A DNA stretch of 64,000 bases from Mobula birostris (lineage: Eukaryota). A program made the position numbers and the translations under genes. Position 1 is the first letter of the stretch. Every line of letters begins with the position of its first letter. Location: positions 16,995,629 to 17,059,628 of the forward strand of contig NC_092384.1 of assembly GCF_030028105.1 (NCBI RefSeq), read 5' to 3'. Below, one piece after another: positions 7,511 through 55,334 of the stretch. The notes beneath the pieces were generated by a model. That model had not been told where the DNA came from, made no database searches, and worked only from the letters and a program-made list of their open reading frames with translations.

Positions 7511-7711
7511 GATTAACACTACCTAGGACAGAAGGGGTAAGAGGAATAAGATTCATAAAAAACTTTGTACAACATTTAGATAACACTTCTAAGGATATAC
7601 CTCCATCAATGAAAACAGGTTTCAGCGTTCCAGGCGAGCAGGTGCAATTCTGATATGAAGAACACACCAATAAACTGAATTTAAAGCACAAACCAGAAAA
7701 ATGAAGAAATT

Positions 7712-9108
7712 AGCTTGACATCGGTGGTTGGGATGTTGTTGGAGTCGATTGTGTAGGATGAGGTTACAGAATACCTGGAGGCATATGACAGAATAGGCAG
7801 AACTGAGCATAGATTCCCTAAAGGAAAATCCTGCCTGACAAACCTATTTCAATTTTTTGAGGAAATCATCAGTAGGCTAGACAAGGCAGATGCAGTGGAT
7901 GTTGTATATTTGGATTTTCAGAAGGCCTTTGACAAAGTGCCACACATGAGGCTGCTTAACAAGATAAGAGCCCATGGAATTACGGGAAAGTTACATACGT
8001 GGATAGAGCGTTGGCTGATTGGCAGGAAACAGAGAGTGGGAATAAAGGGATCCTATTCTGGTTGGCTACGGGTTACCAGTGGTGTTCCACAGGGGTCCAT
8101 GTTTGGGCCGCTTCTTTTTACATTGTCCATCAACGATTTGGGTTATGGAATAGATGGCTTTGTGGCTAAGTTTGCTGACGATACGAAGATAGGTGGAGGG
8201 GCCGGTAGTGCTGAGGAAACGGAGAGTCCACAGAGAGACTTGGATAGATTGGAAGAATAGGCAGAGAAGTGGCAAATGAAGTACAATGTTGGAAAGTGTA
8301 TGGTTATGCACTTTGGCAGAAAAAATAAACGGGCAGACTATTACTTAAATGGGGAAAGATTTCAAAGTTAGGAGATGCAACGGGACTTGGGAGTCCTGGT
8401 ACAGGATACCCTTAAAGCTAACCTCCAGGTTCAGTCAGTAGTGAAGAAGGCGAATGCAATGTTGGCATTCATTTCTAAAGGAATGGAGTATAGGAGCGGG
8501 GATGTGATGTTGAGGCTCTATAAGGCGCTGGTAAGTCCTCACTTGGAGTACTGTGGGCAGTTTTGGTCTCCTTATTTAAGAAAGGCTGTGCTAACGTTGG
8601 AGAGGGTACAAAGAAGATTCACTAGAATGATTCCGGGAATGAGAGGGTTAACATATGAGGAACGTTTGTCCGCTCTTGGACTGTATTGCTTGGAGTTTGG
8701 AAGAATGAGGGGAGACCTTATAGAAACATTTCGAATGTTAAAAGGCATGGACAGAGTGGATGTGGCAAAGTTATTTCCCATGATGGGGGAGTCTAGCACG
8801 AGAGGGCATGACTTAAGGATTGATGGGCGCCCATTCAGAACAGAAATGCGAAGAAATTTTTCTAGTCAGAGGGTGGTGAATCTACGGAATTTCTTGCCAC
8901 AGGCAGCAGTGGAGGCCAATTCATTGGGTGTATTTAAGGCAGAGATTGATAGGTATCTGAGCAGCCAGTGCATCAAAGGTTATGGTTAGAAGGCGGGGGA
9001 GTGGGACTAAATGGGAGAATGGATCAGCTCATGATAAAATGGTGGAGCACACTCGATGGGCCAAATGGCCGACTTCTGCTCCTTTGTCTTATGGTCTTAT
9101 GGTCTTAT
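7712..9108 (+). mobile_element. CR1 LINE, 5'-truncated (RT domain to 3' tail)
   Basis: ORF 7895-8260 (DVVYLDFQKAFDKVPH..SGVPQGS..FADDTK) and ORF 8375-8989; (ATGGTCTT)n tail. Confidence 0.95.
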
Positions 9109-16817: not shown

Positions 16818-16872
16818 ATGGCGGAGAAGTTTACGGTTTCGTACATGACACTTCTGGCTATTACTTGGCTAA
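16818..16872 (+). CDS. Exon 1: signal peptide MAEKFTVSYMTLLAITWL
   Basis: ATG in good context (AAGATGG), hydrophobic core, donor A|GTATGC in phase 1; continues I-VKVTA on exon 2. Confidence 0.75.
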
Positions 16873-19800
16873 GTATGCTGATTTATACACGCCGTTTCCG
16901 AATTGAATATTCCGTTTAATAATATTTAACCCTCGGTGCCTGCAGCATATTCGGTTACCGTTTTTCGTCTATTCGGCCGTTTCTCGCTCTTAGATGTTTA
17001 GTGACTTACGTCATCAGTTTTTGTTAATTCACTGTGTTTAACTGTTATTAATACTCTTGCTTACTTTTCCGGCAGTCGTCAAAGTAACTGCGAACGAAGT
17101 ATCTCAATTCCCGAGGGACTTGGATGTCCTGGGTGGTGCGAATGTTACTATGTTCTGCAAATTTCCACTAACACAAGGTACCGTTGACGTTCGTTGGTGG
17201 AGGCAAGGCGAGAAGGCATTTTTAGAAAGGGACAGCAGAAGACAATTTACTGTAGAAAGGGGAAGAGGAACGCTTGTACTTTGGAATGTCAAATTCAACG
17301 ACTCTGGACTGTATTACTGTGAAGTAAAGTTTCAGGAGCAATCTTTCGGGAGAAGCTGTAGCACCAAGCTCACTGTGTTCGGTAAGTGTGGTTGTTTGGA
17401 GATTTTCGGCTCTGTGCATTTTACATCAAACTTAGTGATAAGGATAAAACGGAATGTTTCTACTTGATAATACAAACGGCGAGAATACATTTGTTTCCCG
17501 CGTTAAAATATACCCCAGTCCAGGGATTCTAAATTCAGAACTACAAAGAACAGAAAAAATTTATGTAGCAACTATTAGGCGCATAATGGAGTTGATTCTG
17601 TTTATCGTATCGTACTTCCTCGGCTCTTCCTTACTGCTGTTTGTCCAGCCCGGTTCATCAGCTATCTCCTAGTTAAACCTGATGACTAAAGTCAGTGATA
17701 CCTTAGGACTTTACCCTCATTATCGCGAAGGTACTTTGAATACAACGAATGACTTTTCAAGCAAGGTTAGGATTGTTTTGCAAGCAAGGGGCTGAACTAA
17801 TATCAATATTAATATGAATGGCTGGCGTTGGATAACTCGATTCGTCTTTACTAAGGACGCAAAATATTAATACTTAAATAGAATAATCTCTATCAAAGAG
17901 TCTGTATGCAGCAGCACAATGCTCCAATCCGCATCAACAAGTAGAGAGGAATAATACCCAACTCCTAACGAGTTAATTCCAACATCAAGTAACAATTTGT
18001 CGCTTGCACTGCAAACTGTCATCCCAACTTTTTTCATGCAGGATTAGCAAAATCTAAACTTCTTTCACCATACAAAATGGGGAGTAATAGAGGCCTCTCG
18101 AGATCGAGGTGAATTTTGATAGGGTTAGATCGTAAAGGGTTGAGAGTCGAGCGCAAACCCACATTCAACATGTCCGCTGGCAGCTCATTCCACAATAGCA
18201 ATACCGTCTGAGTGAAAACGTTTCCGCTGATGTTCGCCTTTAATACTTCTCATTTTACTCTTAAGCTATGACTTCTAATTACATTCTCACCAATCTCAGT
18301 GGATGAAGCAGGCTTACATGCATCAGATCTACATCCCTCATAATTTTGTATACCTCTATCAAATGTTTGCTTGTTCTGTTACGAATCATGAGCAAAAATC
18401 CTAACCTGTTAAACCTTTGCTCGTCATCCATGTCCTCAAATTCATGCCACATCTTTGTAAGTTTTCTTTGTATTTATTCAATCGTATTTAAACTTTACTG
18501 AAGATAGGTAACCAGAATTGCGAACAATACTCCAGATTTGTTCTGAATAACGTCTAATACAACTTCAACATGGCATCCCAACTTCTACGCTCAATACTCT
18601 GATATATGAAGGCCGATATGACAAAGGTTATCGTTACGATACCATCCGCCTTTGACTTCACTTTCAATGAATTATCAATCTATATTCCAAGATAACTTTT
18701 TACCACACTTCCTAATGCGAGTCTCTTTCAGTTTGTATATCCGAGATTGGTTTGTCTTCCCAAAGTAGCAGCATACAATTACCTTCATTAAATTCTATCT
18801 GCGATTTTCAGTCCACCTGGTCTATAACCCGCTGCAAGCTTTGATAGGCATGCAGTCCAGCACTAGTCAAAGGCCTTCGCTCAAAGAACAACCATCTACT
18901 ACCATACTCTGGCTGCTCCCGCGAAGCCTACGTTAGACACAACTTACTCCATCATCCTGAATGCGAAGCGAACGTACTTGATTAGCCCACCACCCTCAGG
19001 CAGAACTTTTCTAAAGTAATTGCTAAAATCCATGTTGACTATATCCACTGTTATCCTTCATCAAGATCAATGGTAACCGGCTCGAAAAGCTCATTAAGAT
19101 TGGTTTTACACAGTCTACCTTGCAAAAAACATGTTGTGTAATCCCAATCAAGCCCAGTCTATTTATTTCTCCTATTGTTTAGAATATCTTTCAATACATT
19201 ACCCAGTTATCTGTAATACCAACTAGTCTATAATATCTCGGCTTATTCCGAGAGTCCATCTTGAACAACGGCACACTAGATACATAATTGGAGCAACACA
19301 CATAAAAATTGCTGGTGAACGCAGCAGGCCAGGCAGCATCGATAGGAAAAGGTACGGTCAGCGTTTCGGGCCGAGACCAATTGGAAAGCAAGTTCATGGG
19401 AAACTGAAAGATCTGAAGGTAGGTAATTCACCTGGATCAGATGATGAACATCCCAGGATTCTGGTAAATGTTGCTCATAGGATTGTGGATGTTTTAATAA
19501 GGTCTTTCAATAATTACTAAATTCTTGAGTGGTTTCGATAGACAAGAAAATTGTAAATGTCACTCCACTCTTCAAGAAGCCTGAAGGCGGAAAAGGGAAA
19601 CTGTAGGCCAGTCAGTCTGACCTCACTAGTTGACAAGATGTTGGAGTCCATCATTAAGGATCAGGACTTAGGTTAGCTGGAGACACATAATAAAACACGC
19701 ACTATTCAGCATAATTTCCTGAAAGGAAACTCTCGCCAGACAAATCTGATTGAATTATTTGAAGGAATAAAAAGTGGGATAGATAAAGATAGGCAGAATC

Positions 19801-22800
19801 GGTTGTTATGCACTTGGATTTTCAGAAGGCCTTTGACAAGGTACCACACACAATGCTGTTAAACAAGCTACGAGCCCAAAGTATTACAAGAAAGATAATA
19901 GGGTGGATAAAGCAGTGGCTGGTTGGTAAGTGACAAACAATGGGAATAAAGTGAGCATTTTCTGGTTGGCTGCCCGTGACTAACGGAGTTCCACAGGGGT
20001 CTGCGCTGTGACCGATTCGTTCAATGTTATCTGTCAATGATATGGATGGTGGAATTGATGGCTTTGTTGCAAAGTTTGCAGACGATATGAAGAGAGGTGG
20101 AGAGGCAGGCAGTTTTAGGAAATAGAGAGGCTACAGAAGGACTGAGACAGATTAGGAGGGCAGGCAAAGAAATGGCAGGTGGAATGCAGTATCGAGAAGT
20201 GTGTGAGCATGCAGTTTGGTGGAGGGTGTGAAAGTTTTGAATATGTTCTAACTGGAGAGAAAACACAAAAAAGAAACATTCAGGTGCAAAGGGATTTGGG
20301 AGTCCGTGTGCAGTATTCCATACAGGTTAATTTGCATTTTGGGTCTGTGGTCAGGAAGGCAAATCCAATGATCGCATTCATTGCAAAAGGACTAGAATAT
20401 AAGGGCCAGGATGTAATGTTCAGACTTCATAAAGCACTGGTGAGGCGTGAGGCGTCACGGCGTATTTTGCATCTTGGCCCCCGAAGAACAATGTTTCGCT
20501 TCAGAGTGTGTGTGTATGGTTGAGCAACAATAAACAGAACGTGAAATTGAAAGGATTTATTAAATACTGGTTAATACTGCGGGTAACTAATTTGATAGTT
20601 GAACGTCATGCTAGTTGGAGGGGAGATAAGGGAAGTTACCTGTACTGATATGGATTGAAAATACTCAATATAACTATGTTTTTACTCAAGCTCCTCCAAC
20701 TCCATTGGAAATTGTTCCTGTTGGAGGGTTTTCGTTTCCTCGAAAGCTCCTTTGTAAAACGGCTGCCTTCTACCCGGAGGAATTAGAAATCGTTTGGCAA
20801 AGAAATAACAAGCAAATTCGCACTGGAATAGAGAGTGTGAAAAACCGAAGCGTGGATGGATTGTTCGAAGCTTTTAGTTTATTGGAAATCACGCAGTCTA
20901 CTTGGGAAAAAGATGTTTACACCTGCCTGGTGTCGCATGGCTCCCTCACGGTGCCTGCCAGTTTCAGCTTCGTCCAGGACCAAGGTAAGATGGTGTTTTG
21001 ATGAAGTCATGATGTTGGATCTCGGCCTTAAACGTCGACATTTTAGATCTGCCTGATGGGCTGAGTTCCTCCATTTTATGTGTTATTCTGAATTCAGCAT
21101 GTTCAGAATCTTCTGTGCTCAATGTAAATGGAAGTCTTTACAAGTCATAGCTTGTGGGGTAAATGTGACCTTGTTAAGAACAGTAACTGAACAGCTACCC
21201 AAACACGGAAAGAATGGCTAATTTTGAAGTTTAGTAATTGACAGGGAATATTAAACGTGAACGGTGTTCAAAAGTTAAAGTGTTATTCCGGTCAGTGTTA
21301 ATCGTGTAGGACGAATAAGGAAATTGAATTCGTGCAATATTTGTAAGGTAGCAAACGTTTGAACATTTGCTAAAAATATGACAAAGCAAAACTTAAACTC
21401 TAAAAGACATAGTAATATAACAAAGGTGAGAATATGCATTTCGTATCTTACGATATATTTCCCGATCGTGTGTACTGAGATTTGAAACGAGCCTGTAAAA
21501 TATTTTGGATTGTTGATTGTCATGTGTGCATTTGTTTTTAGATGAAGAAATGCTTCACAGTTTCTTGTTTTTCCCCCTATTGATCCACAAGGTGCTGATA
21601 CTAAATTGATTCTCTCATATACACTGAAGGGAGCGGCAATTTTAGCACTGATAATGGTTTTGGTGACAGTCAACTTAAAGAGATCGCACGGTAAGAACGA
21701 TGATCGCTGAGAAACATCACCTCTATTCGTCCAAACAGATGCGTTAATGATATTTAACCGCAAAACAGTAAATGCCCTTTACAAAATGACTGGACATGGA
21801 TTGCGATTTTCGAAGTCAGACTCAGTGATAATGCCCAGTTACAATAGAAGGTAGATCTTAAAATTCAACTATTTCACCAGTCCACTCGAAGTATTACACA
21901 TCTCATTCACAAATGCTTTTCTATAATTTTGGAGTTCTTCAACTGTTTTAAATGCAATGGCAGATCTATACTTTGAAGCGTAAAGAACACTGACGAGCTC
22001 GTGCATGTCTCATTGATTTTAATTTCCATTTCAGCGACAGTATTTAAGTGTAGTACGGCCACTGATATACTATTATCACTTTACAGCTTCGTTAAAAGTT
22101 TATTGAGCATAGTGCCATGAGGTTGACGCGGAACACACACTGTATCAGGACAATTGATATCACCAAATGCTTTCTGAAATATCCGTACCTTGCGCAGTTC
22201 GTCTTACACAATGAATTCGATTCGTATCAAACGAATAAAGTCCAATTTTTACAATACAAATAATTTATTTTATTTTTCTTAAGGGATTAACAGAAGTTCC
22301 TTGAACAGATGTCAGAATGAGGAGCCGGTAGGTGAACTGGATCGTCTTCTTTCAGAGCCATGTATACGCATAGTAGAGATATTATAAATTTATTTTGTTC
22401 CACAACATTTTGGAATGCAGTAGGGAAGAATGAAACCATTCTCTCTGACCAGTTTTTAAATTTTGAAGTATATATCCAAGATGTATTTGAATATTCCTGT
22501 TGAATATGCTTCAAATCGTCTTTGAGGATTCAACACCAGTTCATAACCGGTTGCATTAAGGCGCTCGGCAATATTAACTAATGGACGTTAAGCAGTTACT
22601 CATACTTCGTGTGGCGAATAATTAAATACAAATCTAAGACTGGGATGTTTTAGATGTAAAATGTCGGTTTACGAGAATTGCGATGTAGTGCCAATCGGAA
22701 AATACAGTACACGCACGAATCATTTCGCAATATATGTTACATTTGATTTGAACGCACAGTAAGCAAGCTTAAAAATGCAATGAAATCTTGCTTTGGAACG

Positions 22801-24328
22801 TCATATGCAGTTTTTAACCCCGATTCCCAACAAAGATTCACACAGCCGTGCATAACCTGCAATGTAATCGAATATGCTTCCAATTAAACCTTGTACTATC
22901 TGGTGCACAATGATACCCAAACCAAACTCCACAAGACACCTTCTACTCCACGGGGCTACGCTGAACGATGATCATCCTCAATTTGGAAAGAAATGCCTGA
23001 AACATATAAATGTATTGTCATCTCCCATTTTGGATTCAAACCAGATATTAAAAACCTATAACGACATCTTTGGAGGCAGTAATAGTTGTCCCTTCAGATG
23101 GAACCTCCTTCCCCAGAAAGCAACGTAAATGTTAGCTGTTTCTCTTTGCTCTCGTGTTTCCTGTTTCACCGTAAGTTTTATTTGTCTGTTTTATTTCATA
23201 TTTCCAGCAGTTTAATGTTATTAAATTTGTCCCACCTGGATTCTCCTGATAGGATATATTAAATATTTATCGGTTGTATACCCATCTGTCTACAACTGGA
23301 AACGTCTTCTTGTGTTCCATTAATCGCCTTCCCAATTTTAGCACATATTTTTACTTTTACGTAACAATAGCTGCTGCAGCAACTTTTCACATCACCAAAA
23401 CAAGAATGTCATATATAATACTGGTTTTATTATAGCAGAATTCCGTAAGTACTTTCATCAGTGTTCGTAGTACTTCTTGGAATGAAGGACTGCTAATGCG
23501 AGGAATACCTAAGTTGAAGCTAGAACATTCAAGATAACATTTTCACTGTTGTTTTATTGCTCTGGTATGCTATGTCATTGTTTAAGCCAAAACAAATGCT
23601 ATTTTAACTATTTACTTTAACGGGCAAGTCCATCTGCTCTAATTATTTCGATCGTAGTTTAATTGATGCACTAGTAAAACCAATCAGCTCATCAGCGGGC
23701 AAGATGCTTCTCCCATATTTGCTGCCTTAGTTACGTAAGTACACCAGGTCTTGCCATTTGTTTCAAGGTTCATAACTTAAACAATGCGAGCTTTAAGGGT
23801 CACCGTTTCGAATTGCACCGAGGGGACGAAATCTGGTCATGCCAATGATTACAATTATTTGACGGGGTGCGTAAGGGAAACGGATCGGATAAAGCCCATG
23901 CAAAAAAAAACTTAGAGGATCGTAACTAGAGATATGACAAAAAAAATGAAACAAAAGAGATGGCCAGAACTGAGAAACGCCTCGATAGATAGGAAGGTTT
24001 TAACTGGTTGTTTGGAAATCTAATGTACACAGCGATTTCCCGCCTGAAATGGATTTGGTATCCCACTCCTGTAAGATATAGGGACAATATTTTTGTGCGC
24101 ACCCAAAATGTTACTCCAACCATTTAAAATAATTTTCTATGATTACATGTTCCGAATCGAACTTAGTTCATGGTCACTGACCTCTGTATTCGTTACCAGT
24201 ATTAACTGTGTTTTCTCTAGCAGGCTGAACAAGGAGCGGTTGAGCACGCCACTGCTTATAATTCACTAAATATGAGGGAGAGCACAGGAATTCGCAAAGA
24301 TCCACAACAAGAAGTGCGCATTATCTAA
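16818..24328 (+). CDS. SIRP-like / non-rearranging antigen-receptor-like Ig-superfamily receptor (leader-VJ-C1-TM-cytoplasmic), ~300 aa; join(16818..16872,17076..17381,20691..20984,21592..21690,22284..22327,24224..24328)
   Basis: Six consecutive GT-AG exons with compatible phases (1,1,1,1,0) give an uninterrupted ORF with signal peptide, V-set, C1-set, TM and tail. An exon-6-skipping form joining 22327 to 26625..26756 would be ~309 aa. Confidence 0.88.
17076..17381 (+). CDS. Exon 2: V-set Ig domain with germline-joined J-like strand
   Basis: Acceptor CTTACTTTTCCGGCAG; VSQFP..GANVTMFC, VRWWRQ, DSGLYYC, FGRSCSTKLTVF; donor G|GTAAGT. Confidence 0.95.
18060..19270 (-). mobile_element. Degenerate CR1 fragment in intron 2
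   Basis: The reverse complement resembles CR1 RT and C-terminal sequence; heavily mutated. Confidence 0.65.
19400..20455 (+). mobile_element. CR1 RT fragment in intron 2
   Basis: RPVSLTS, LDFQKAFDKVPH, GVPQGS and KFADD motifs with stops. Confidence 0.85.
20691..20984 (+). CDS. Exon 3: C1-set Ig domain
   Basis: APPTPLEIVP..KLLCKTAAFYPEELEIVWQRN..DGLFEAFSLLEI..YTCLVSHGSL: the FYP, DGxF and YxCxVxHxSL C1 motifs; acceptor ..TTTTTACTCAAG, donor G|GTAAGA; phase 1-1. Confidence 0.95.
21592..21690 (+). CDS. Exon 4: transmembrane exon GADTKLILSYTLKGAAILALIMVLVTVNLKRSH with intramembrane Lys
   Basis: 99 nt, phase 1-1; polypyrimidine acceptor ..TCCACAAG, donor G|GTAAGA; ~22-residue hydrophobic stretch followed by KR; Lys codon at 21627-21629. 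Confidence 0.88.
22284..22327 (+). CDS. Exon 5: cytoplasmic GINRSSLNRCQNEEP
   Basis: Acceptor TATTTTTCTTAAG, donor CCG|GTAGGT; 44 nt converts phase 1 to phase 0 as required by the downstream exons. Confidence 0.75.
22773..23072 (-). pseudogene. Possible decayed MHC class I-like alpha1/alpha2 sequence, antisense in intron 5
   Basis: One minus frame with 3 stops reads RYRFLISGLNP..LYVSGISFQIEDDHRSA*PRGVEGVLW..YSITLQVMHGCVNLCWESGLKTAYDVPKQDFIAF; TLQxMxGC and AYD..DFIAF resemble class I alpha2 motifs. Spacing is imperfect. Confidence 0.35.
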
Positions 24329-24334
24329 TCTCAG
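24224..24334 (+). CDS. Exon 6: cytoplasmic (Q)AEQGAVEHATAYNSLNMRESTGIRKDPQQEVRII* with in-frame TAA at 24326-24328
   Basis: NAGNAG acceptor TTTTCTCTAG|CAG (start 24221 or 24224), donor CAG|GTAACG; the last 14 codons align without gaps to paralogue 40179-40220, which has TAT at the stop position. Confidence 0.8.
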
Positions 24335-24379
24335 GTAACGCCGACAGATTAGCTTGAAGAACATATGAATTTGTTTTTG

Positions 24380-24622
24380 AGATATAGCACTGCAACAGAG
24401 CCATCCGGCGGAACTAGTTCGTCCCGCCCAATTACACCCATGTGACCAATTAGCATACTCAACAGTTCGTCTTTGGAATGTGAGAGGAAGTCAGAGCGCC
24501 CGAAGAAAATCGTACGGTCATGGGGCGACGAACAAACACACTATTTAGTCAGGGACGGAAATTCAACCTGGATCACTGCTGCTGTAATACGGTTACGCTA
24601 GCCTCTACGCCATCGTGCCACC
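24380..24622 (-). mobile_element. tRNA-derived SINE (V-SINE/HE1-like)
   Basis: The reverse complement starts GGTGGCACGATGGCGTAGAGG (A-box-like) ..CCAGGTTGAATTTCC (B-box-like), then a TAATTGGTCACATGGGTGTAATTGGGCGG core; a remnant is shared at ~40262-40340. Confidence 0.7.
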
Positions 24623-24629
24623 CAAAATA

Positions 24630-25345
24630 TATATAAGACCAACATATAATTGAACATTATTAGATTATGAGAACACTAAGTCCCTTTTTATTGTCATTTA
24701 GAAATGCATACATGCATTAAGAAATGATAAAATGTTTCTCTGGAGTGATATCACAGAAAACAAGACAGACCAAAGACTAACACTGACACAACGACATAAT
24801 TATAATATATAGTTACAGCAATGTAAAGCAATACCACAATTTGATAAAGAACAGACCATGGGCACAGTGAAATAAAGTCTCAAAGTCCGGAGTCGATCGA
24901 CTCCTGAGTCCCCGATAGCAGGCGGCAAAAGGGAGAAACTGCCTGCCATAAAACTCCAGACACCGTCAACTTGCCGATACCTTGGAAGCAGCCGACCCTA
25001 GCCGACACTGAGTCCGTCCGTTCGAAAACTCCGAGCTTCCGACCAGCCTTTCCGATACAGCCTCCCGAGCGCCATCCTCTGCCGAGCGGCTTCGGCCTCT
25101 CCCCGGCCGCTGAAACACGCAAAGCCGAGGATTTCCGGGCCTTCTGCTCCGGAGATATCCGGTTACCACACAGCACCAACGGCAGCGAAGCAGGCATTTC
25201 AGAAGCTTTCCAGGTGTTCCGCTGTTATCTCACGTCTGTCTCCATCAAATCAGAATTGCTCACGGTCCCCTACTTGACAGATAACAGTTTTTCATCACCG
25301 AAGTGGCCGCGGGCACTGACGTCACACCGCCATCTTCTCCCCCCT
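24630..25345 (-). mobile_element. Non-autonomous LINE-derived element (AAGATGGCGG 5' motif, CATAATCTAAT tail)
   Basis: Same family as 40340-41020 (shared CTTCTGAAATGCCTGCTTCGCTGC core); no coding capacity. Confidence 0.6.
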
Positions 25346-25449
25346 CCCGCGAGGCTCATTTTACGACACTGAGCAGACCTTTGGCACTTTACCAAAATGT
25401 AGACTGCACCAGAGCTCACCCTCTTTCACAGAAAATGAACCTGGTACCA

Positions 25450-25985
25450 TTTACAACTGAACGCTCTCGAAATATAATCACCTTTTACTTCAGTCCAGGT
25501 GGACTCCAACCTGAAGGCATGAACACTGATCTCTCGAACTTTTGAACTATTTCATCATCCCCCTTCTCTTTTTTCTCTATTCCTAATTCTGACTTCCTTT
25601 CACCTTTTCTCTCCTCTCCATCTGCCCATCACTTCCACTGGTGCACCTCTTCCTTCCATTTCATCCAGGGTCCACTGTCACCTCCTAAAAGATTCCTTCT
25701 TGCACCCTTTTCCTTTTCCACCTATCACCTCCCAGCTAACTACGTCATTCCATCCCCGATCATTCACACAGCTTCTTACTCACCCGGTTTCTCCTATCAC
25801 CTGCCATTTTGTACTCTTTCCACACCCTGTTATTCTAGCTTCTGACCACTTCTTTTGCTGTCCTGATAAAGCGCTTCGGACAGAAACGTCGACAGTTTAT
25901 ATGCCTTCATACATGCTACCTTACCTAATGAATTACATCGGCATTTTCTTGCATTTCTCAAGACTTTCAGCATCTACAGGAACCT
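25450..25985 (+). mobile_element. Penelope-like element 3' fragment
   Basis: CTCCAACCTGAAGGCATGAAC (end of GIY-YIG ORF), pyrimidine-rich tract and terminal GAAACGTCGAC motif; orthologous copy at ~41120-41635. Confidence 0.75.
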
Positions 25986-26624
25986 TCGAGATTATCTTTT
26001 TCCCATTGCTTTTACGAATTTGATTTCATATGTTATGTGCAAACAAGGAAACACTAAAAAGCATGAAACTAGATATAACCATCCTTTGCAACGCCTATTA
26101 CCAGCTCCATAATGGACATGAATAACTGATCCAACCGAACAGTGGTGTTATTCATGGAAATATCGAATAGTGACAAAACAGTAACCATACGGCATGGATC
26201 ATGACAGTGTCTGTGAGCATTTGGAGTTCTGCAGGAAACACCCGGAAGATCTCTTGACTGAAACGTTTGCGGCAATCAGACACATATAACACAAAAAGGC
26301 GCTTGCATTTTGAGGTATAAAATATTTTGTACTATACCCGTTTAAGGAGTTACCTACTCTCCCAAGTCGATTTTGTTAAAATTCATTTCAAGTAAGGAAA
26401 GAAACGCTTATATTTCTGTGGGACGACGCAGGTTCTTGGAGTTGAAATACCACATGAATCAAAAAGCAAAATTTTGAAAAAAAATGACATAAACATTGTG
26501 TAAAGCGGCAGACACCTAAAATTGATAACTTATGAGTGCATAACTAATTTATTTCATAATTTTTGATTCGATTTGTCAACTCGATGATTGTCGATTAACC
26601 ACTAATTTCAAATTATTTTCACAG

Positions 26625-26756
26625 ACTAAAAGAAATGGAGCTGACAATCTGGCTTACGCCGCTCTGCAGTTTCCCGATTCCAAGAACACCTCAGCAGCCC
26701 AACATCAAAACCAACATACATTGTATACAGATGTAAATGCATCAAGGAAACTGTGA
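26625..26756 (+). CDS. Exon 7 (terminal): TKRNGADNLAYAALQFPDSKNTSAAQHQNQHTLYTDVNASRKL* with ITIM (LAYAAL) and ITSM (TLYTDV)
   Basis: Acceptor ATTATTTTCACAG, phase 0, 44 codons to TGA; ITIM 26649-26666, ITSM 26718-26735. Translated only if exon 6 is skipped or its stop is absent. Confidence 0.85.
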   Translation, partial: TKRNGADNLAYAALQFPDSKNTSAAQHQNQHTLYTDVNASRKL

Positions 26757-26949
26757 AGATGAGAACCAACTGGCGTTCAGAGCTATAGGTTGTCAAGGAC
26801 TGCAGGCACCAGGCATTGCTTCGTTCCATTTCTTGCATTCAGACAAAAGCTTGTTAATCGATATCACATGCATAAGTTGACAAGATAAGCGATCATTTTA
26901 GTCACCGAAGTTCCTGTGATTTAATTGGGGCGATTATCACTGGAAAAAT

Positions 26950-26955
26950 AATAAA
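26950..26955 (+). promoter_or_regulatory. Candidate polyadenylation signal
   Basis: AATAAA ~195 nt after the terminal-exon stop. Confidence 0.4.
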
Positions 26956-29879
26956 AGTAAGAAATGTAAGAATAAGATTGAGAATAAGCCATTCTGCCTC
27001 TCTCTACTGCCCGGTCATTCAAGAGGATAAAGTTCAACCATAATCTCCATTGAACCGTCTCCGATCATTCCATGAAATAAGCCTACTTTGGCTTAAGTAC
27101 CCCCACCCCAGGATATTCCCTCCAAAGTCCTCAAAGGATGAAGGATGAAGAGAAATCAGAGATTCGTCACCACCGGCGAGAGAAACTTGATTTGCAGGGT
27201 AAAAATCGCTCATGGAACGGTCATTCTTGCTCACTTATGTCAACGTTCAACTGAGGGAAATATAGATTTGAAGATATGAAAAAACCGCAAAGTATTCTCG
27301 CGATAATACCTCTGTGCCTAAGTATTGATCAGTAAATGTCGTATGAAAAAAAATCAGTACTCTTCTGTTTCATATACATTCACAGCTTGTTGCTCAATAT
27401 TAGTTGTAAAATGCAACTGCACTATCACATGGTCGTAACCGGAATCTCAGGGCACCCAAAAGGCAATAGAAATGCATTGTAACCGGTGGACCTGTCGCAG
27501 CCCACACTGAAGTAGAGGAGCTACGTACATGGTCATATTAAAGGAGGTCAGGTTTAGACTAGTCATAACATTGGACCAAAAAACGTGGACGTTGGAAAGT
27601 AGATTTATATAGAAATCACGTGTCTCGATGTGTACTCTCGAAGAATATGGTGTTTTGCACAGAGCTCCTCACCGATTAATAACTGCCCAATTGCCCAACA
27701 GAGCAAAATAAACCTGAAATGTGCCCAGCATTTATTTGGCCAATAGTCAGCAAATTGACGTATTAATTTCGGTTCAGGTAGATGTATGTGTGACATAACA
27801 GGGTGAGCATCCTGTTATAATAATACCTTATTGTTGCTAATCACGTCAGCGTGGTTGGTGGATAAGGTGCGGAACGAAGGATGGCGGGGAGTAGGTACAG
27901 GGAACATCGACAGTGAAATAATTCCCCTGTCTGATAATGCAAACAACAATCTATTCCTGAAAGAGTTTCGGTATTCCAGATAAATTGGCAAAAAATAATA
28001 GAAACGTACGTGCTTGGAAATGAGAGTCGGCCGCTCAGACCTATTTTGCTGGATATGCTGGCTGAGATAGATTTCCCGATGAGAACCATTCATTCACTTC
28101 CTTCTCCTAGATCACTTCACATTTCAAATCTCGCCGATTTGTCCACTTTCAAATATTGTTTTGATATTTACTTTCAGGTAAAAATGCACAGTTATATCTT
28201 GTTCGTAGTTGAAATATCGTTGTACTCTTATCTTTCTTACTCATTTCTTCATTTACTCATTAAAAACACAAATAGCCGTTTGTCATTTCTCTGAAGGGCA
28301 AAGTCACAAGAATAGACCATTTTCACAAGCGTGCGAAATGCTGGTGATATGTTCTAATGTCCTTTTCCAGACTTATTCAGTTTCAGCTCAGATCAGCATC
28401 GTTTTAAACTTATATCATTATTTGCTCGCAGTGGAGAATGCCCTGTGCAAAAAAAAAGTAGTGCTGTCTAATACTGATGCAAAAGGACATGTGCACTATA
28501 TTTATTGCGAAAAAGATCAGTACAGTCTAATGAAGAAAGTAAATAAGCACAATATATAAACGATAATCGGTTCAGGGATTTTAAATATTTATAAACTTGA
28601 CAATTCCTCTGAATCATCCCAATCAAGTGCATTCGGTCACTGCGGTGGCCTGAGAGACTGCGCCATCTCTGATTGCTACGCTGTTACGACGTTAACTTCA
28701 TACTGCCCCTCCCCCAATTCTATCGCTTTGCGCTGTTACAATCTGTTTAGAAACACTCTTCTCACTCCTAGCAAACAATACAATAAATGATAAACTCTAT
28801 CTTATTCGCGAAACACCCGACGTGATTTTGAACCTTGGTTTCTCACTTTGGCTCATTTCAGAATTAGAAGGCGAAATCTCGGTTAAAAAAATGTTTCGGA
28901 GAATCACTGAGGGTGCATTATACGCAAAATGCGTTTATTAAACATCTTAAGTAAAGGTCGCTTTGCACTGCCGACTGAGCAGCATTAATCCCATGGTATT
29001 GTTTTCTTGGGTGATCACGATTTCCCCCATTAACTGTCCAATATATATCTTTTAATCAATCTTAATAAAACATCTTTGATCGACAGTTATTATATGTCTT
29101 TGCAGGAATCTGCAACGAGCAAATTGGATCAAATCTTTGTTGTTACGCTTCCAAACACTGCACTATTCCATCCCACTGCCACCAGATTCGGATATGGCCC
29201 AAGTGCGGAGCGAGAGACACTGAAGTGGGTCGAGAGTTCACAAAACTTTATTGCGAGCAGTGTTAAACGGAAAATAAAACAATAAACGCCAGGCCAAACA
29301 GGGCCGTTAACTAAAAAACTCAGCGGTAAGAGAGGCCTACAGTGCTGCTGAAAAGAACATTTAAGAATTGAACGAAGACCATGAGTCTTCAGAATCAGTT
29401 GAATCGAAAGTCCAATTTCTCTGGGAAGACCGAATGCAAACAGGCAGCCAAGCATTGCTGTGTTCTGTTCAATTCTCGACAAGCACTTGGACGACAAGTA
29501 TGGAGTTAAATACTATCACTATTACATAATAATTAGCTGAAACGTGCATATTCACAAGCGCAATTGTGTATCTACTGTGCTGCCGAATCCGTGGGTGTGA
29601 CACCCACGAGCTTGGTTCCTCCTATCACCGGTCGTTCACTTCTTTTTCACATTTATATATTGCGCATTTTCCCTCTACACACTAAACCCCGAGTCCTCAA
29701 TTCAAAACATTAAACACCCGCATTGCCCGGCCCACCAAATCCGTCGAGTAATTTCCTTTTATTTCAATTATTATTTGACATTTTCAAAGATACTTGTGAA
29801 TATTCCGAGGAACAATGAAGTTGAAATGTAATTCCATGCAAGCACGGTATATTTTACCCTAAAGCTTTATGATTATATA

Positions 29880-37204: not shown

Positions 37205-37560
37205 ATCTGACGGACAGTAACCAAGGTAAACATGTAATTCAATCTTGTTTTGTTGGAATGGTCTTTACAATATTAAATGCAGTTTAACCCCGATCCGCAA
37301 CAAAGATCCACACAGCAGTGCATAGCCTGCAATGGAATCGAATATAATTGTAACCAAACCTTGTAGTACTGTATGTGGTGAACAATGATAACCACATGTT
37401 ATACGAAATTCCACAAGGTACCTTCTTGTCCACGATAGATATCATCTTGAATTTGGGAAGCAGAGCCTGAAACGGATAAAAGTATTGTCGACTCCCATTT
37501 GGATTCAAACCAGAAAATAATCTGTAGTCACTGACGGATTTTGGTAATAGAACCAGTTGA
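37205..37560 (-). pseudogene. Paralogous copy of the possible MHC class I-like relic
   Basis: Homologous to 22745-23100; reads ..RGQEGTLW..IQYYKVWLQLYSIPLQAMHCCVDLCCGSGLNCI*YCKD. Confidence 0.3.
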
Positions 37561-38249
37561 CATTCCATATTGAAGACCCTTCCGCAGATTGCAAAGTAAA
37601 CGTTAACTATTTCTCTTTAACTGGTGGTTCCTGATCTACTAAAAATTTGTGTGTTCTATGTCCCTGTTTTGTTTCATGTTTCCTGCACTGCAGTGTTATT
37701 ATTTTTTTTCCCTACCTGGATTCATTCTTCTGATAACATTTGTCTTCTTGTGTTTCATTAATCACTTTCCCCAGTTTAACGCATTTAGTTTTAATCTTAC
37801 CTAACGACCTTAGGTGCAAATGAAGCGACAGCAGCAACTAGACTAAGGTAGTCATACGTACATCACTGATTTCATTATAGTAGAATACCGCTGAAACTTC
37901 TACCAGTGCTCATAACACCTCCGAAAATGTAAGGCTACTTCTTCGAGTAATATCTAAGTTAAAGCTGAAGCGTTCATGATTAAATTTTTACTGTTATTTT
38001 ATTACTCTGGAATGCTATGCCATTATTTCAGCCAAACAAACGCCATTTTTACCATTTACTGTAACGACTACGTCCATGTTCTCTACCTACTTCGATCGTA
38101 ATTTAAGTGATTTTCCAGCAAAACCAATCAAATCAACGGAGACCCAGGATGCCGCTCCCGTGTTTCCGGTTGAGTTAAGCGAGACTTAGTATCGGGACTT
38201 GCCAGTTGCTCCAATATCCTTAACTTAAACAATGTGAGTGGTAAGGGCC

Positions 38250-39285
38250 ACAGGCTCAGTATGGACCGTAGGGACAAACTCTGGTCACGACAATGATTAT
38301 AATAACGGAGAACCTCATCCTATTCATAGGACTGTTATAAGCGGTGATTTGAAAATCACCGCAACTTTTCGCAACCTCCGCCACATTCAACAGGAACCCA
38401 CCACTAAGCGCATCTTTCCCTCTCCACCCTCTCTGCTTTCCACCGGGACCGTTCCCTCCGCGACTCCCTGGTCCACACGTCTCTCCCCATGGATTTACCA
38501 CCCGGCACTTATCCCTGGAAGCCTACGTGCTACACCTGTCCTTACACATCCCCTCTTGCCACAATTCAGGGCCCCAAACAGTCCTTCCAGGTGAGGCAAC
38601 ACTTCACTTGTAAGTCTGTTGTGGTCATCTATTGCACCGGGTGCTCCTGGTGCGGCCTCTCTACATTGGTGAAACCTGACGCAGACTGCGGGACCGCTTT
38701 GTCGAGCACCTCCGCTCCATCCGCCACAACAGGCAGTATCTCTCAGTTGCCACCCACTTCAACTCTGCTTTACATTGCCATTCGGTTATGTCCATACATG
38801 GCCTTCTCCACTGCCGTGATGAGGCTAAACTCAGACTGGAGGAGCAACACCTCATATACCGCTTGGGTAGTCTCCAGCCCCTTGGTATGAACATTGAATT
38901 CTCCAGCTTCCGGCAATTCCCACTCCCTTCTGTCCCCCATCCCAGTTTCACTCTGACCCCTCCCCCAGCTGCCTATCACCTCCCTCATGGTACCTTCTCC
39001 TTCTACTACCCATTGTGCTTTCCGTCATACCTTCGTTACCTTTCCTACCTATTTCCTCCCTGCTTCGCCTCCCCCACCCCTTTATCTTTCCCCTTACTGA
39101 TTTATCACCTGGCATCTAGCAGCCTTCTCCTTCCCACTTTCCACCCCCCCCACACCTACTTTAGAGGACCTCTGCCCCTTCTCTCTTCAGTCCTGATGAA
39201 GAGTTCCGTTGTGAAACATTGACTGATCCTTTCCACGGATGCTGCCCGACCTGCTGAGTTCATCCAGCGTGCTGTAACTGTTGCT
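38250..39285 (+). mobile_element. Penelope-like element (GIY-YIG endonuclease and terminal region)
   Basis: CYTCPYTS..QSFQVRQHFTC..VIYC..CSWCGL.YIGET..LRLEEQHLIYRLGSLQPLGMNIEF across frames. Confidence 0.9.
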
Positions 39286-39411
39286 GTGAAAATCTTAACA
39301 TTGCGACTTCCAGCCTGAAACCGTCGAGATCCCATCTCCGGTATAATGTATGGACATTTTCATTGTGCGCAGACAAAATGTTATTCCAACAATTTGTTTA
39401 TCCTTGTTGTC

Positions 39412-40105
39412 CTCTGACCCCTGTTTCCATCCAGGGGGTCAGTGTGGACATGGTGGAGGACTGCAAATACCTGGGAATACGAATTGACAATAAACTGGAC
39501 TGGTCAAAGAACACTGAGGCTGTGGTTCAGAGCCGTCTCTATTTCCTGAGGAAACTGAGGTCCTTTAACATCTGTCGGACGATGCTGAGGATGTTCTACG
39601 AGTCTGTGGTGGCCAGTGTTTTCACGTTTGCTGTTGTGTGCTGGGGCAGCAGGCTGAGGATAGCAGACACCAACAGAATCAACAAACTCATTCTTAAGGC
39701 TAGGGATGTTGTGGGGATGGAACTGGACTCTCTCACGGTGGTATATGAAAAGAGGATGCTGTCTAATTTGCATGCCATCTTGGTCAATGTCTCCCATCCG
39801 CTACATAATGTACTAGGTGGGCACAGTACATTCAGCCAGAGACTCATTCCACCGAGATGCAACACAGAGCGTCATAGGAAGTCATTCCTGCCTGTGGCCA
39901 TCAAACTTTACAACTCCTCCCTGGGAGGGTCAGACACCATGAGCCAATAGGCTGGTCCTGGACTTATTTCATAATTTACTGGCATAATTTACATATTACT
40001 ATTTAACTATTTATAGTTCTATTACTATTTATTATTTATGGTGCAACTGTAACGAAAACCAGTTTCCGCCGGGATCAATAACGTATGATTATGACTATGA
40101 CTATG
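39412..40105 (+). mobile_element. Rex1/Babar LINE 3' fragment
   Basis: ORF 39363-39950: KYLGIRIDNKLDWSKNT..QSRLYFLRKLRSFNIC..HPLH..TERHRKSFLPVAIKLYN; (ATGACT)n tail. Confidence 0.9.
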
Positions 40106-40162
40106 GTTTAGGTTTTACAACTCTAAGTTAGTTTATGATCACTGAGCTAACCTGAACTATAG

Positions 40163-40220
40163 GGAGAGCAAACCATTTCGCAAAGATCGACAACAGGTGG
40201 ACCGCGTTATCTATTCCCAG
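40163..40220 (+). pseudogene. Exon 6 remnant of the paralogue (..RKDRQQVDRVIYSQ|GT)
   Basis: Donor CAG|GTAAAG retained and Tyr codon TAT at 40212-40214; the acceptor and 5' part of the exon are deleted relative to 24181-24270. Confidence 0.75.
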
Positions 40221-40339
40221 GTAAAGCAGAGAGATTAGCGTGAATATGATACAGATTTTCATTAGAGATATACCACGGTAACTGACCTTTCCGGTGCAAC
40301 TAGTCCTTGCCGCGCAGTCACACCCATGTGACTAATTGA

Positions 40340-41020
40340 CCTCCTAACCTGAACGTCGCAGCAGCCTCTATGGTGGTGATGTCTGTTATTTATCAAGTAG
40401 GGTGCCGTGCACAATCTTGATTTGATAGAGAGGGACATGAGAGCACGGAGGAACATCTGGTGAGACTTCTGAAATGCCTGCTTCGCTGCTGCTGCTACTG
40501 TGTGGTCCGAAATCTTCGGAGTGGAGGGCCCCGAGTCCTCAGCTTTCCTTGTTGCTTGGTGACCGGCGTGGGGTCGAAGGGCTCGGCAGAAGTTTGTGCT
40601 CCGTGCTCAGTGCTCAGTGTCGAAGGGCTGGTCGGAGGCTTGAAGTTTTCGGACGGACTCTGAGTCCGCTGCGTTCGGGTGCTTCTAATGGTGCTGCATC
40701 GGCAAGTTTGCGGCGCCTGGAGGTTCATGGCAGTGAGAGTTTCTCCCTTCTACCGTCTGCGTGAGATGGTGAGGCTGTCGGGACTTTGAAACTTCTTTTT
40801 TTACCGTGCCCATGGTCTGATCTTTATCAAATTACGGTATTGCTTTGCACTGTTGTAACTATATGTTGTAATTATGTGGTTTTGTCAATTTTAGTCTTGG
40901 TTTGTCCTGTGTTTCTTGTGATATCATTCTGGAGGTACATTGTGTCATTTTTTAATTAATGCATTTCTACATGACAATAAACGAGGACTGAATGTCTTCA
41001 TAATCTAATGTAATCTAATA
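40340..41020 (+). mobile_element. Non-autonomous LINE-derived element (same family as 24630-25345)
   Basis: Shared core sequence; tail ..CATAATCTAATGTAATCTAAT. Confidence 0.6.
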
Positions 41021-41119
41021 CCATTGACACTGTAACAAAATATAAAGTGCGTCATATCTAATCTCCTTTCAGTGAAAAGTAACCAATCACCGCATACAAC
41101 TTCACATTCTGGCACAAGG

Positions 41120-41635
41120 ATAATATTCTCTTCTATCTGGGGACACTCCAACCTGAAGGCATAAACATCATTTTCTCCAGCTTTTGGGAATTTTCCCATC
41201 ATTCCGTTCTGTCATTTTCCTTTCTCAGTTCTGGTTCCCTTTCACCTTTTCTCTGCTCGTCATCTGTCCATCAGGCTGCTCCCACCTCCTGGCTCCACCT
41301 TCTACCATTTTGCAGGGTCTACTGTCTTCCCGTATCCGATTGCTTCATACACCGTTTACCTTTTCCACCTGTCACCACCCAGCTTCTCACTTCATTCCCA
41401 CCCCAATCATCCACATACCTTCGCATGCACCTGGTTTCACCTGTCACCTGCTACCTTCCCCGCACCCCGTCCATACCTTTCATATTCCGGATTCTGATCC
41501 CTCTTTTCCAGTCCCGATAAAGCATCTCTGCCAGAAACAATCGATAGTTTATTTACCTTCTTGCAAGCTGCCTTACATAATGAGTTCCTTCATTATTTTG
41601 TTTGCATTCTTCAGGATTTCCAGCATCGGCAGAAT
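41120..41635 (+). mobile_element. Penelope 3' fragment orthologous to 25450-25985
   Basis: CTCCAACCTGAAGGCATAAAC; same position and orientation relative to flanking unique DNA. Confidence 0.7.
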
Positions 41636-42279
41636 CTATAGAGATCGTTTTTTCCTTGCTTTTACAGATTTAATTTGGCAGGCAATCTTCACGTGAAGAA
41701 ACGCCAAAAGGCACGAAACCGGGAATGCCATTCTTCCCAACCCCCATTATCAGCTCCATAATAAAGACGAGTGTCTGGATAATAACCGAGGATAACTGAA
41801 CTAGCGGAAATATCGAATTGTGACAAAACTGTAATGTGAGAGCCTGACTGAATAAAATACCAACGTTCATTCTATCAATTATGCTCTGTCCACTGACGAC
41901 AATGTCCATGTATATTTAGAGCTGCGTTGGCAGGTGCAGCCGAGTAAACAGCAGTGAGCTGTACAGACGAAACGGGATGCGGCAATCAGACACCGATGAT
42001 ACAAAATACGATTTTATTATAAGTTAGCCAATTATTTTGTACCATAACTGCAACTTCAAGGATTTTTCTACTCTCTTAACCTGATATTGTTAAAGTTCTT
42101 TTTTAAGTAAGGAAAAAAAACGCTAATATATAAATCATAAAGGCATATCTTGAAACAATGTTGACATAAATTGTATACAAAGTGAAAGCAACCTGAAGTT
42201 CATTACTTATGGGTACATCTCTAAATTATGTTACAATCCTGTGATTCATTCAGTCACTAAATGCTCGATTATAGACAAT

Positions 42280-42540
42280 AATAGACAATAGACAATAGAT
42301 GCAGGAGTAGGCCATTCGGCCCTTCGAGCCAGCACCGCCATTCTCTGTGATCATGGCTGATCATCCACGATCAGTATCCAGTTCCTGCCTTATCCCCATA
42401 ACCTTTGATTCCGCTATCTTTAAGGGCTCTATCCATCTCTTTCTTGAAAGCATCCAGAGACTTGGCATCCACAGCCTTCTGGGGCAGAGCATTTCATATA
42501 TCCACCACTCTCTGGGTGAACAAGTTTTTTTTCTCAACTA
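42280..42540 (-). mobile_element. CR1 3' end inserted just upstream of the paralogue's terminal-exon acceptor
   Basis: (AGACAAT)n tail then GCAGGAGTAGGCCATTCGGCCCTTCGAGCC, a reverse CR1 3' end. Confidence 0.8.
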
Positions 42541-42575
42541 CTCAACTAACCACTGATTTTGCATTACTTTCACAG

Positions 42576-55185: not shown

Positions 55186-55334
55186 CAGCAAGAAGTGGTG
55201 GAGCAGACCCTATCGGCAAAATGGACAGAATCTGCTCCTATAACTTATGGACTTCTGGTTTTACGGCTAATTTGCTTCATCTGCATCCTCGTTTTCCCAC
55301 CTACCTGTCACCCATTCTGCCCACTTGCTGATTG

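Follow-up and report, generated by a model that had tools for sequence, protein, structure and literature searches.

We interpret the TAA codon near the end of the sixth exon of a receptor gene of Mobula birostris (gene A) as the genuine, long-fixed stop of a short-tailed member of a receptor family whose proteins combine V domain, C1 domain and transmembrane (TM) helix. On this interpretation, to which we assign a probability of roughly 70%, gene A is the non-inhibitory paired partner derived from an inhibitory ancestor. The gene lies in the window, by which we mean the whole analysed stretch of 64,000 nucleotides. Exon modelling yields seven exons at 16818-26756 on the plus strand, with AG/GT at every junction and consistent phases. 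The product is arranged as leader, V-like domain, C1-set domain, TM helix with Lys231, and tail.

16818-16872, plus strand: exon 1, ATG and signal peptide, ending in phase 1; N-terminus identical to XP_072135415.1
17076-17381, plus strand: exon 2, V-like Ig domain with J-like G strand FGRSCSTKLTVF; Pfam V-set, I-set and Ig_3; AF2 pLDDT >90
20691-20984, plus strand: exon 3, C1-set Ig domain; Pfam C1-set, E=2e-13
21592-21690, plus strand: exon 4, stalk and TM helix LILSYTLKGAAILALIMVLVTV; Lys231 is AAG at 21627-21629
22284-22327, plus strand: exon 5, juxtamembrane piece GINRSSLNRCQNEEP, ending in phase 0
24221-24334, plus strand: exon 6, coding for AEQGAVEHATAYNSLNMRESTGIRKDPQQEVRII and then TAA; NAGNAG acceptor (RefSeq: 24224), hence 111 or 114 nt
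24326-24328, plus strand: TAA stop, in place of the ancestral tail Tyr codon, 6 nt 5' of the exon 6/7 junction
26625-26756, plus strand: exon 7, open 43-codon frame with ITIM LAYAAL and ITSM TLYTDV, then TGA

The RefSeq protein XP_072135415.1 (Mobula birostris, 300 aa), modelled from the assembly that also supplied the window, matches the product of gene A at 100% up to the TAA, and its recorded CDS span of 7511 bp corresponds to 16818-24328. The stop is the natural, already annotated end of gene A and in itself ordinary. Exon 7, lying 3' of it, belongs to the 3' UTR of the annotated mRNA and would be translated only upon skipping of exon 6.

The end of exon 6 reads ATT ATC TAA TCT CAG/GT at 24320-24336, with TAA as codon 301, in agreement with the preliminary description of this DNA. 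The paralogue mentioned there, which we locate further downstream (copy B), reads GTT ATC TAT TCC CAG/GT, with TAT at 40212-40214. A degenerate 17-mer spanning the exon-6 end has two matches in the window against 0.10 expected, the other being located at 40206-40222. The two copies align without gaps from ~24262/40150 through the donor and on for ~140 nt into the intron, and they are colinear over ~7 kb (22752-29868 vs 37210-45532) at 65-76% identity. The use of copy B as an intact paralogous comparator gene, in contrast, had to be abandoned. A tblastn search (word size 2, E up to 20) found no counterparts of the leader, V, C1, TM and exon-5 segments in the window, leaving copy B as the relic of a 3' gene end.

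39258-40104, plus strand: repeat element with a 230-aa ORF (PF09004), abutting and truncating copy B exon 6 and replacing its 5' third
40149-40220, plus strand: copy B exon-6 homologue, of which the 3' two-thirds survive, with TAT at 40212-40214; preceded by an in-frame TGA; the first ~40 nt of exon 6 have no homologous sequence here
42576-42707, plus strand: copy B exon-7 homologue, ITIM LTYVAL retained, ITSM tyrosine gone (TLHAGV)

As a relic, copy B cannot show the ancestral state at the stop codon. For the same reason, the exon-7 substitutions between the two copies (~19 non-synonymous to 7 synonymous), which look neutral, are uninformative. Two further features were seen in the window, namely a second occurrence of the repeat element at 51038-51310 and a C1 relic on the minus strand at 1859-1936.

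The long-tail relatives of gene A can offer a view of the ancestral state. Those examined, from Mobula, Hypanus, Heterodontus, Heptranchias, Chiloscyllium and Callorhinchus, and thus covering rays, sharks and chimaera, display (I/V/T)(I/V)Y at the stop position. Since all of them carry the tyrosine, Tyr is the ancestral state, and the earlier proposal that TAA replaces a tail tyrosine codon gains a broader footing. At the column of Lys231, all long-tail relatives, the shark and chimaera outgroups included, harbor Gly. Taken together, Tyr at the stop and Gly at the Lys column in all long-tail relatives point to an ancestor of inhibitory type. Its tail would have had four tyrosines, corresponding to the motifs TxYxxL, IIYSQT, LTYAAL and TLYADV of the long-tail relatives: Y1 in TxYxxL, Y2 in (I/V)IYSQT, Y3 in LTYAAL (the ITIM) and Y4 in TLYADV (the ITSM).

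A Tyr-to-stop change at Y2 would end translation 6 nt (TCTCAG) before the exon 6/7 junction, which is counted as the last junction since no coding exon follows exon 7 in the relatives. This distance is well below the ~50-55 nt of the escape rule for nonsense-mediated decay (NMD), as had been argued before, and the mRNA of gene A would be expected to escape NMD. Both the ITIM and the ITSM are encoded by exon 7, 3' of the TAA, and are removed by the stop. The predicted product is a type I membrane protein of 300-301 aa with a charged membrane helix and without Y2, ITIM and ITSM. The claim of a tail devoid of ITIMs stands for the exon-7 motifs but goes too far for the tail as a whole, as gene A retains the TxYxxL sequence T-A-Y-N-S-L around Y278. 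The short-tail proteins read HATAY[N/D]S at this place, and the tyrosine with its HATAY context is conserved in all three of those considered here and in most long-tail relatives. In the manta, this TxYxxL motif could, by its sequence, bind SH2 phosphatases.

The two other short-tail proteins are XP_059849400.1 from Hypanus sabinus (P0193) and XP_072926710.1 from Hemitrygon akajei (P0182). Both end with '...RII', at the same residue as gene A. The single Tyr-to-stop switch proposed in the preliminary description is upheld as regards the ancestral tyrosine; it is not a fresh event, however, given that the stingray proteins end at the same residue and that RefSeq models a natural stop. Because of these shared ends, the truncation is in all likelihood older than the divergence of the manta lineage from that of the stingrays. 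Judging from the protein ends, the stingray stop presumably occupies the same nucleotide position.

The relationship between the three short tails becomes clearer upon comparing the two halves of the proteins. Exon-6 identity to gene A amounts to 24/34 for P0193 and 29/34 for P0182, against 19-23/34 for long-tail relatives. A search with residues 216-300 alone returns the gene A protein, P0182 and P0193 and no others, and in the tree of TM, exon 5 and exon 6 these three proteins form one clade (96/97). In the ectodomain tree, gene A falls within a Mobula-only clade together with long-tail genes (100/97), whereas P0193 is placed elsewhere (100/99). The gene A ectodomain is 84-85% identical to those of the manta long-tail proteins P0195 and P0197, and 60% to that of P0193. 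The ectodomain topology is disfavoured for the TM, exon 5 and exon 6 region, with a marginal AU test p=0.046 over only 82 columns. Such a mosaic of a short-tail module and a long-tail-like ectodomain appears, at the sequence level, as the typical pattern of paired receptors. The TM-plus-short-tail module would in each species be joined to an ectodomain like that of the neighbouring long-tail, inhibitory-type genes. A non-inhibitory partner may have arisen from an inhibitory ancestor, after which the module could have spread or been homogenised by recombination.

The charged residue of the membrane helix is placed as previously described. Lys231 is part of the 19-residue window that scores best for hydrophobicity, and the hydropathy maximum includes it. 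At the same column, both stingray short-tail proteins, XP_059849400.1 and XP_072926710.1, carry Asp, and because of this a simple story of Lys plus a DAP12-type adaptor is not secured. Lys in the manta vs Asp in the stingrays is a poor fit to one shared adaptor. On our inference, a signalling adaptor would be recruited through the charged TM residue and the net output would be activating, which would make gene A a paired receptor with activating function.

The family itself, with V domain, C1 domain and TM helix, is a multigene family present in rays, sharks and chimaera; a representative search with the C1-set exon 3 gave 765 relatives. Its members bear automatic names, either 'tyrosine-protein phosphatase non-receptor type substrate 1-like' (SIRP-alpha-like) or 'NCR3 ligand 1-like'. 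In gene A, the V domain and J-like strand share one exon and are followed by the C1-set domain, and the AF2 model of the ectodomain contains two confident Ig domains. The J-like motif reads FGRSCSTKLTV in gene A vs FGNGSGTKLTV in relatives, with both glycines after FG replaced (G-x-G to S-C-S). Similarity of the ectodomain to known structures is of the generic V/C1 kind, with Ig light chains and B7-H6 ranked first by Foldseek. Among the best PDB sequence matches listed for the exons of the V and C1 domains, and likewise among the 50 top-ranked Foldseek matches, there was no SIRP chain. There is a single C1-set exon in gene A, rather than the SIRP pattern of V followed by two C1-set domains.

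One objection, that a TAT or TAC was misread or misassembled as TAA, draws on the one-base distance between TAA and TAT and on the sequence being known from one assembly only. Two independent assemblies of other genera nevertheless hold proteins that end at the same residue and have the most similar exon 6, and we regard an error as hardly credible. It is also quite improbable that gene A is decaying toward a pseudogene, with the stop as its first disabling lesion. The cluster does show birth-and-death turnover (copy B, the C1 relic and other truncated relatives), the J-motif glycines of gene A are replaced, and in the tail tree gene A sits on a rather long terminal branch (0.16 vs a median of 0.10). 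However, exons 1-6 are all open and their splice sites intact, and the terminal branch in the ectodomain tree is 0.076 vs a median of 0.066. Of 49 highly conserved columns in the ectodomain, gene A departs from the family at 4 (family range 0-9), two of these conservatively (Y to F). Furthermore, the same stop position and a well-conserved exon 6 have been kept in two other genera.

A genuine short tail might still be used in two other ways. We consider it possible, though doubtful, that gene A has a dual output, which would be compatible with our preferred reading of the TAA as a genuine stop. Exon 6 would then be a stop-bearing cassette whose inclusion gives the short tail, while skipping from exon 5 to exon 7 gives the Lys helix a tail with both exon-7 motifs, ITIM LAYAAL and ITSM TLYTDV; a single gene would then supply a non-inhibitory and an inhibitory isoform. 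Both junctions flanking exon 6 are in phase 0, and with a length of 111 or 114 nt its skipping preserves the frame. The acceptor of exon 7 is still good, its frame is open and the two tyrosine motifs persist. For a paralogue in the manta, isoform X2 (P0167, XP_072135227.1) is annotated with NEEP joined straight to TKGNGADKL, and the stingray protein P0200 also is without exon 6. For gene A, in contrast, RefSeq lists one product, and the search for independent transcript-derived copies of the protein ended in a 90% cluster of one member from one assembly. Exon 7 of gene A has 7 private amino-acid changes, 3 of them at otherwise invariant sites and including two in the ADKLTYA core. In this, exon 7 is on a par with that of copy B, a pseudogene (7 and 4), and above functional members (1-5 and 0-2). 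The identity of exon 7 between gene A and copy B, 75%, is no higher than that of the flanking non-coding DNA (70-76%).

The other use, a short form that is still regulatory or inhibitory, strikes us as unlikely. Here, Y278 (TAYNSL) would serve on its own for docking, either in the manner of an ITIM or ITSM or as a Grb2 site of the pYxN type, and the TM Lys would be incidental. The manta TxYxxL comes near both the ITIM and the ITSM consensus patterns, and the sharing of the tyrosine and its HATAY context beyond the manta would fit such a role. In SIRP-alpha-type tails, however, tyrosines are paired for tandem-SH2 phosphatases, and the partner needed for such pairing is exactly the lost one. The residues following Y278 vary between the short-tail proteins, with Asn in the manta and Asp in the stingrays at +1, and Leu in the manta and Hemitrygon but Arg in Hypanus at +3. 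All three short-tail proteins moreover carry a charged residue where long-tail members have Gly. As a speculative extension of the preferred reading, which we would not expect to hold in full, myliobatiform rays might possess an ancient portable cassette of short tail and charged helix within a SIRP-like V-C1 family. It would have been recombined onto varied ectodomains, its charge sign flipping with a change of partner, with a splice toggle to the kept ITIM/ITSM exon.

Knowledge of paired activating and inhibitory receptors is most advanced in mammals (KIR, Ly49, SIRP), where activating forms arise repeatedly from inhibitory ones via a charged TM residue and a tail-truncating stop. Gene A would have followed this two-lesion route within a family of cartilaginous fish known solely through automatic annotation; our literature search found no published description of this V-C1 family as paired receptors. 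Activating KIR emerged from inhibitory KIR through a TM Lys and a stop codon inside the ITIM (Abi-Rached & Parham 2005, PMC2213150). As in gene A, the KIR2DS/3DS lineage and Ly49 combine a charged TM residue with a stop in a tail tyrosine motif, followed by recombination onto other ectodomains (PMC2213150). The Ig architectures are unrelated, with V plus C1-set in gene A and D0-D2 in KIR. Activating KIR are described as short-lived (PMC2213150), whereas the short-tail module of gene A is shared by two ray lineages. Departing further from KIR, one tail tyrosine is kept and the sign of the TM charge differs between manta (Lys) and stingrays (Asp). The module common to both lineages and its helix charge differing in sign set the locus apart from the mammalian picture. 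For elasmobranchs, the locus offers a concrete entry into the signalling of innate receptors and their use of adaptors.

The likeness to the SIRP family extends to the RefSeq names of the relatives, the V domain with a J-like strand followed by C1-set, and the presence of long-tail and charged-TM short-tail members in one cluster. Long-tail members also have four tail tyrosines in two pairs, the likeness to SIRP-alpha being drawn from the RefSeq names and from general knowledge of that receptor. Within the SIRPs, SIRP-alpha is inhibitory, while SIRP-beta1 has a TM Lys and a very short tail. SIRPs have two C1 domains, however, and with one C1 domain in gene A and no SIRP-specific match in the PDB and Foldseek searches above, orthology to SIRP is not supported. 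KIR2DL4 and chicken CHIR-AB combine a charged TM residue with an ITIM and have dual function; the hypothetical exon-6-skipped chain of gene A, with its TM Lys and ITIM/ITSM tail, would be similar to them.

Non-rearranging VJ-C1 genes of lower vertebrates (UrIg/UrIg2; PRARP) resemble gene A, which appears to have a germline-joined V(J) exon and a C1-set domain in a cartilaginous fish, albeit with the altered J-like motif described above. UrIg2 is unlike gene A in being V-C1-C2-C3 and antibody-like, and the text of its description makes no mention of ITIM, SIRP or tyrosine (PMC12227049). Among PDB sequences, UrIg2 is the best match to the C1 exon of gene A.

The exon model of the manta receptor gene (copy A, 16818-26756), built by reading the sequence and then translating it, comprises seven exons on the + strand, with AG/GT at all junctions and agreeing phases.

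Exons of the manta gene
Exon 1, 16818-16872, + strand, signal peptide
Exon 2, 17076-17381, + strand, V-like domain, last strand J-like
Exon 3, 20691-20984, + strand, C1-set domain
Exon 4, 21592-21690, + strand, stalk plus helix LILSYTLKGAAILALIMVLVTV
Exon 5, 22284-22327, + strand, juxtamembrane piece
Exon 6, 24221 or 24224 to 24334, + strand, tail piece containing TAA
Exon 7, 26625-26756, + strand, ITIM plus ITSM

Pfam finds V-set/I-set and C1-set domains in the product, and AlphaFold2, supplied with a family alignment of 32 sequences, predicts two Ig domains (pLDDT mostly >90) followed by a disordered tail. A Foldseek search with this model ranks Ig light chains at the top, the best TM-score being that of B7-H6. 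In the J-like strand FGRSCSTKLTVF (17340-17381, product residues 109-120), neither glycine of the family FGNGSGTKLTVF is retained, and Cys113 stands unpaired. This cysteine, which may be an interchain disulfide site, also occurs in the clade of the related P0165, P0194 and P0195 (SSCGTSLTVF).

Codon 301 is TAA (24326-24328), with the exon 6 donor six bases further. Direct reading of 24320-24336 gives ATT ATC TAA TCT CAG|GT, and the only other match in the window to the degenerate 17-mer (two matches against 0.10 expected) is GTT ATC TAT TCC CAG|GT at 40206-40222, in a second similar stretch, copy B. The surroundings, 22752-29868 and 37210-45532, are colinear at 65-76% identity (blastn), and local alignment runs without gaps from ~24262/40150 across the donor site into the intron. 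The two stretches are homologous, and the contrast of TAA with TAT drawn in the preliminary description stands. Within intron 6, a 630-nt piece is inverted between the copies (24659-25287 versus 41009-40383, 75% identity) while its flanks are colinear, reflecting either a local inversion or a repeat inserted in opposite orientation.

That description had taken copy B for a paralogous gene, which is not borne out. Tblastn found no counterparts of the leader, V, C1, TM or exon 5 for copy B within the window, and where the initial third of exon 6 should lie there is a repeat element (39258-40104; PF09004 match) that recurs at 51038-51310. A TGA stands in frame just upstream of the surviving exon 6, and the ITSM has lost its tyrosine (TLHAGV). 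Because copy B is not a gene, it cannot polarise the change. The wider family can: every long-tail relative examined (Mobula, Hypanus, Heterodontus, Heptranchias, Chiloscyllium, Callorhinchus) has Tyr at the stop position, in the motif (I/V/T)(I/V)Y(S/A)Q, which makes Tyr the ancestral state and TAA the derived one.

Used as the query of a representative search, the C1 exon returned 765 relatives. The close ones are V-C1-TM proteins from rays, sharks and chimaera, with RefSeq labels including 'tyrosine-protein phosphatase non-receptor type substrate 1-like' and 'natural cytotoxicity triggering receptor 3 ligand 1-like'; a literature search found no papers treating this receptor family as paired receptors. 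One relative, XP_072135415.1 of Mobula birostris (P0168, 300 aa), matches the manta product at 300/300 residues when the 24224 acceptor is taken for exon 6, and its CDS, recorded as spanning 7511 bp, coincides exactly with 16818-24328. Public annotation thus already counts the TAA as a natural stop; as the RefSeq model was built on the same assembly, it is no independent check of the base call.

The end of the manta protein ('...RII') falls at the same residue in two proteins from stingrays: P0193 (XP_059849400.1, Hypanus sabinus, 304 aa) and the N-terminally partial P0182 (XP_072926710.1, Hemitrygon akajei). Their exon 6 identity to manta is 24/34 and 29/34, respectively, against 19-23/34 for long-tail relatives, and all three have further derived states in common: (S/A)YT ahead of the helix charge, together with VNLKRS and EHATAY. 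A query with residues 216-300 returns only these three. In a maximum-likelihood tree of the TM, exon 5 and exon 6 columns they form one clade (support 96/97), and an AU test disfavours a topology constrained to unite the manta gene with its relatives by ectodomain (p=0.046, 82 columns). Mobula belongs to the Myliobatidae, Hypanus and Hemitrygon to the Dasyatidae. With the stingray stops judged from protein ends, the simplest reading is that the truncation is older than the split of these two families.

The ectodomain displays a different affinity. Its tree places the manta gene within a Mobula-only clade (support 100/97) that holds the long-tail P0165, P0194, P0195, P0197 and P0201 together with the short-tail P0172 and P0176, which carry Arg in the helix, whereas P0193 falls in another group (100/99). 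Ectodomain identity is 84-85% to long-tail manta neighbours versus 60% to P0193. Similar ectodomains on opposite signalling modules are the defining look of paired receptors, and the manta mosaic agrees with the recombination phase described for KIR evolution (PMC2213150). The mechanism at the manta gene also matches the origin of short-tail KIR. Likeness to SIRP is confined to the tail layout and RefSeq names. There is no support for placing the manta gene in the SIRP family proper, as it has one C1 domain only and SIRP-specific similarity of the ectodomain was found neither among the best PDB sequence hits listed nor among the top 50 Foldseek hits.

Inside the most hydrophobic 19-residue window of the product lies Lys231 (AAG, 21627-21629), at a column occupied by Gly in long-tail relatives and by Asp in P0193 and P0182. 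A helix charge thus goes with tail truncation in manta and both stingrays, but its sign is not constant, being Lys in the former and Asp in the latter. Fc-epsilon-RI-alpha and CD16A have a TM Asp yet pair with FcR-gamma or CD3-zeta, and Asp is therefore compatible with adaptor coupling; given the difference in sign, however, a DAP12-type adaptor held by a Lys-Asp salt bridge cannot be taken as common to all three. Besides this Lys/Asp charge reversal, other members carry a charge a few residues earlier, namely Arg (P0172, P0176) or Glu/Arg (P0012, P0153).

The manta gene does not have the look of a pseudogene in decay. Its exons 1-6 have open frames, its terminal branch in the ectodomain tree is 0.076 against a family median of 0.066, and the product deviates at 4/49 highly conserved ectodomain columns (family range 0-9), namely two Tyr-to-Phe changes and two J-motif glycines. 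The short tail is not motif-free: Y278 persists within TAYNSL, and the stingray proteins conserve its HATAY context but not the residues at +1 and +3.

The frame of exon 7, TKRNGADNLAYAALQFPDSKNTSAAQHQNQHTLYTDVNASRKL, is still open and contains both motifs (ITIM LAYAAL, ITSM TLYTDV). With a length of 111 or 114 nt, exon 6 could be skipped without shifting the frame, and an annotated isoform of a manta paralogue (P0167) does skip it; an ITIM/ITSM isoform of the manta gene is therefore possible. Strong use of exon 7 is nevertheless argued against by its seven private substitutions, three at otherwise invariant sites and two of those in the ADKLTYA core. This load equals that of relic copy B (7 and 4) and lies above that of functional members (1-5 and 0-2). 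Moreover, exon 7 identity between the copies, 75%, is not above that of flanking DNA, and RefSeq gives a single product for the gene. For the short-tail product, established rules lead us to infer that the mRNA would escape NMD and that the protein would pair with an adaptor and give an activating signal. The observation itself is real and the core of the proposed reading largely right, but this is not a newly visible single-base event, the TAA being the annotated natural stop of an old short-tail lineage.

Tail truncation recurs in the family. Among proteins from Hypanus sabinus and Hemitrygon akajei, P0200 (Hypanus) joins exon 5 to exon 7 without exon 6 and stops at '...HTL', directly ahead of where the ITSM tyrosine would stand, while P0170, P0171 and P0173, ending in 'TTK', extend only two residues into exon 7; these truncations are independent. 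P0172 and P0176 combine the helix Arg with an unrelated short tail. Such recurrent truncation amounts to birth-and-death evolution within a paired family. In the RefSeq models P0012 and P0169 (Mobula), the exon 5 donor is read through into the intron (…EDPVGEV…, …AEPVRVV…), giving short tails via intron retention; these are genuine alternative 3' ends or else artefacts of the modelling. Intron 5 of the manta gene, read through likewise, would give VGELDRLLSEPCIRIVEIL and then a stop.

Outside the receptor exons the window is mostly repeat-derived. A LINE-like element is present in three copies (7710-9101, 19678-20444, 53763-55257), with an RVT_1 match (E=5e-17) in the ORF at 7757-8257. On the - strand, 1859-1936 holds the relic of a C1-set exon end (KVIYTCVASHETLKIPANFS*IIEQG) with a stop in frame, which reads most like P0061 (M. 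hypostoma) and P0068 (H. sabinus); as the remaining ORF appears unrelated or repeat-derived, this is probably what is left of a dead paralogue in the opposite orientation. A tandem array of AGGCTGGGGTCTTGCCTCTTGAGACTTG-like units with 14/28-nt periodicity at 58850-59073 has long ORFs on both strands, which are probably repeat artefacts.
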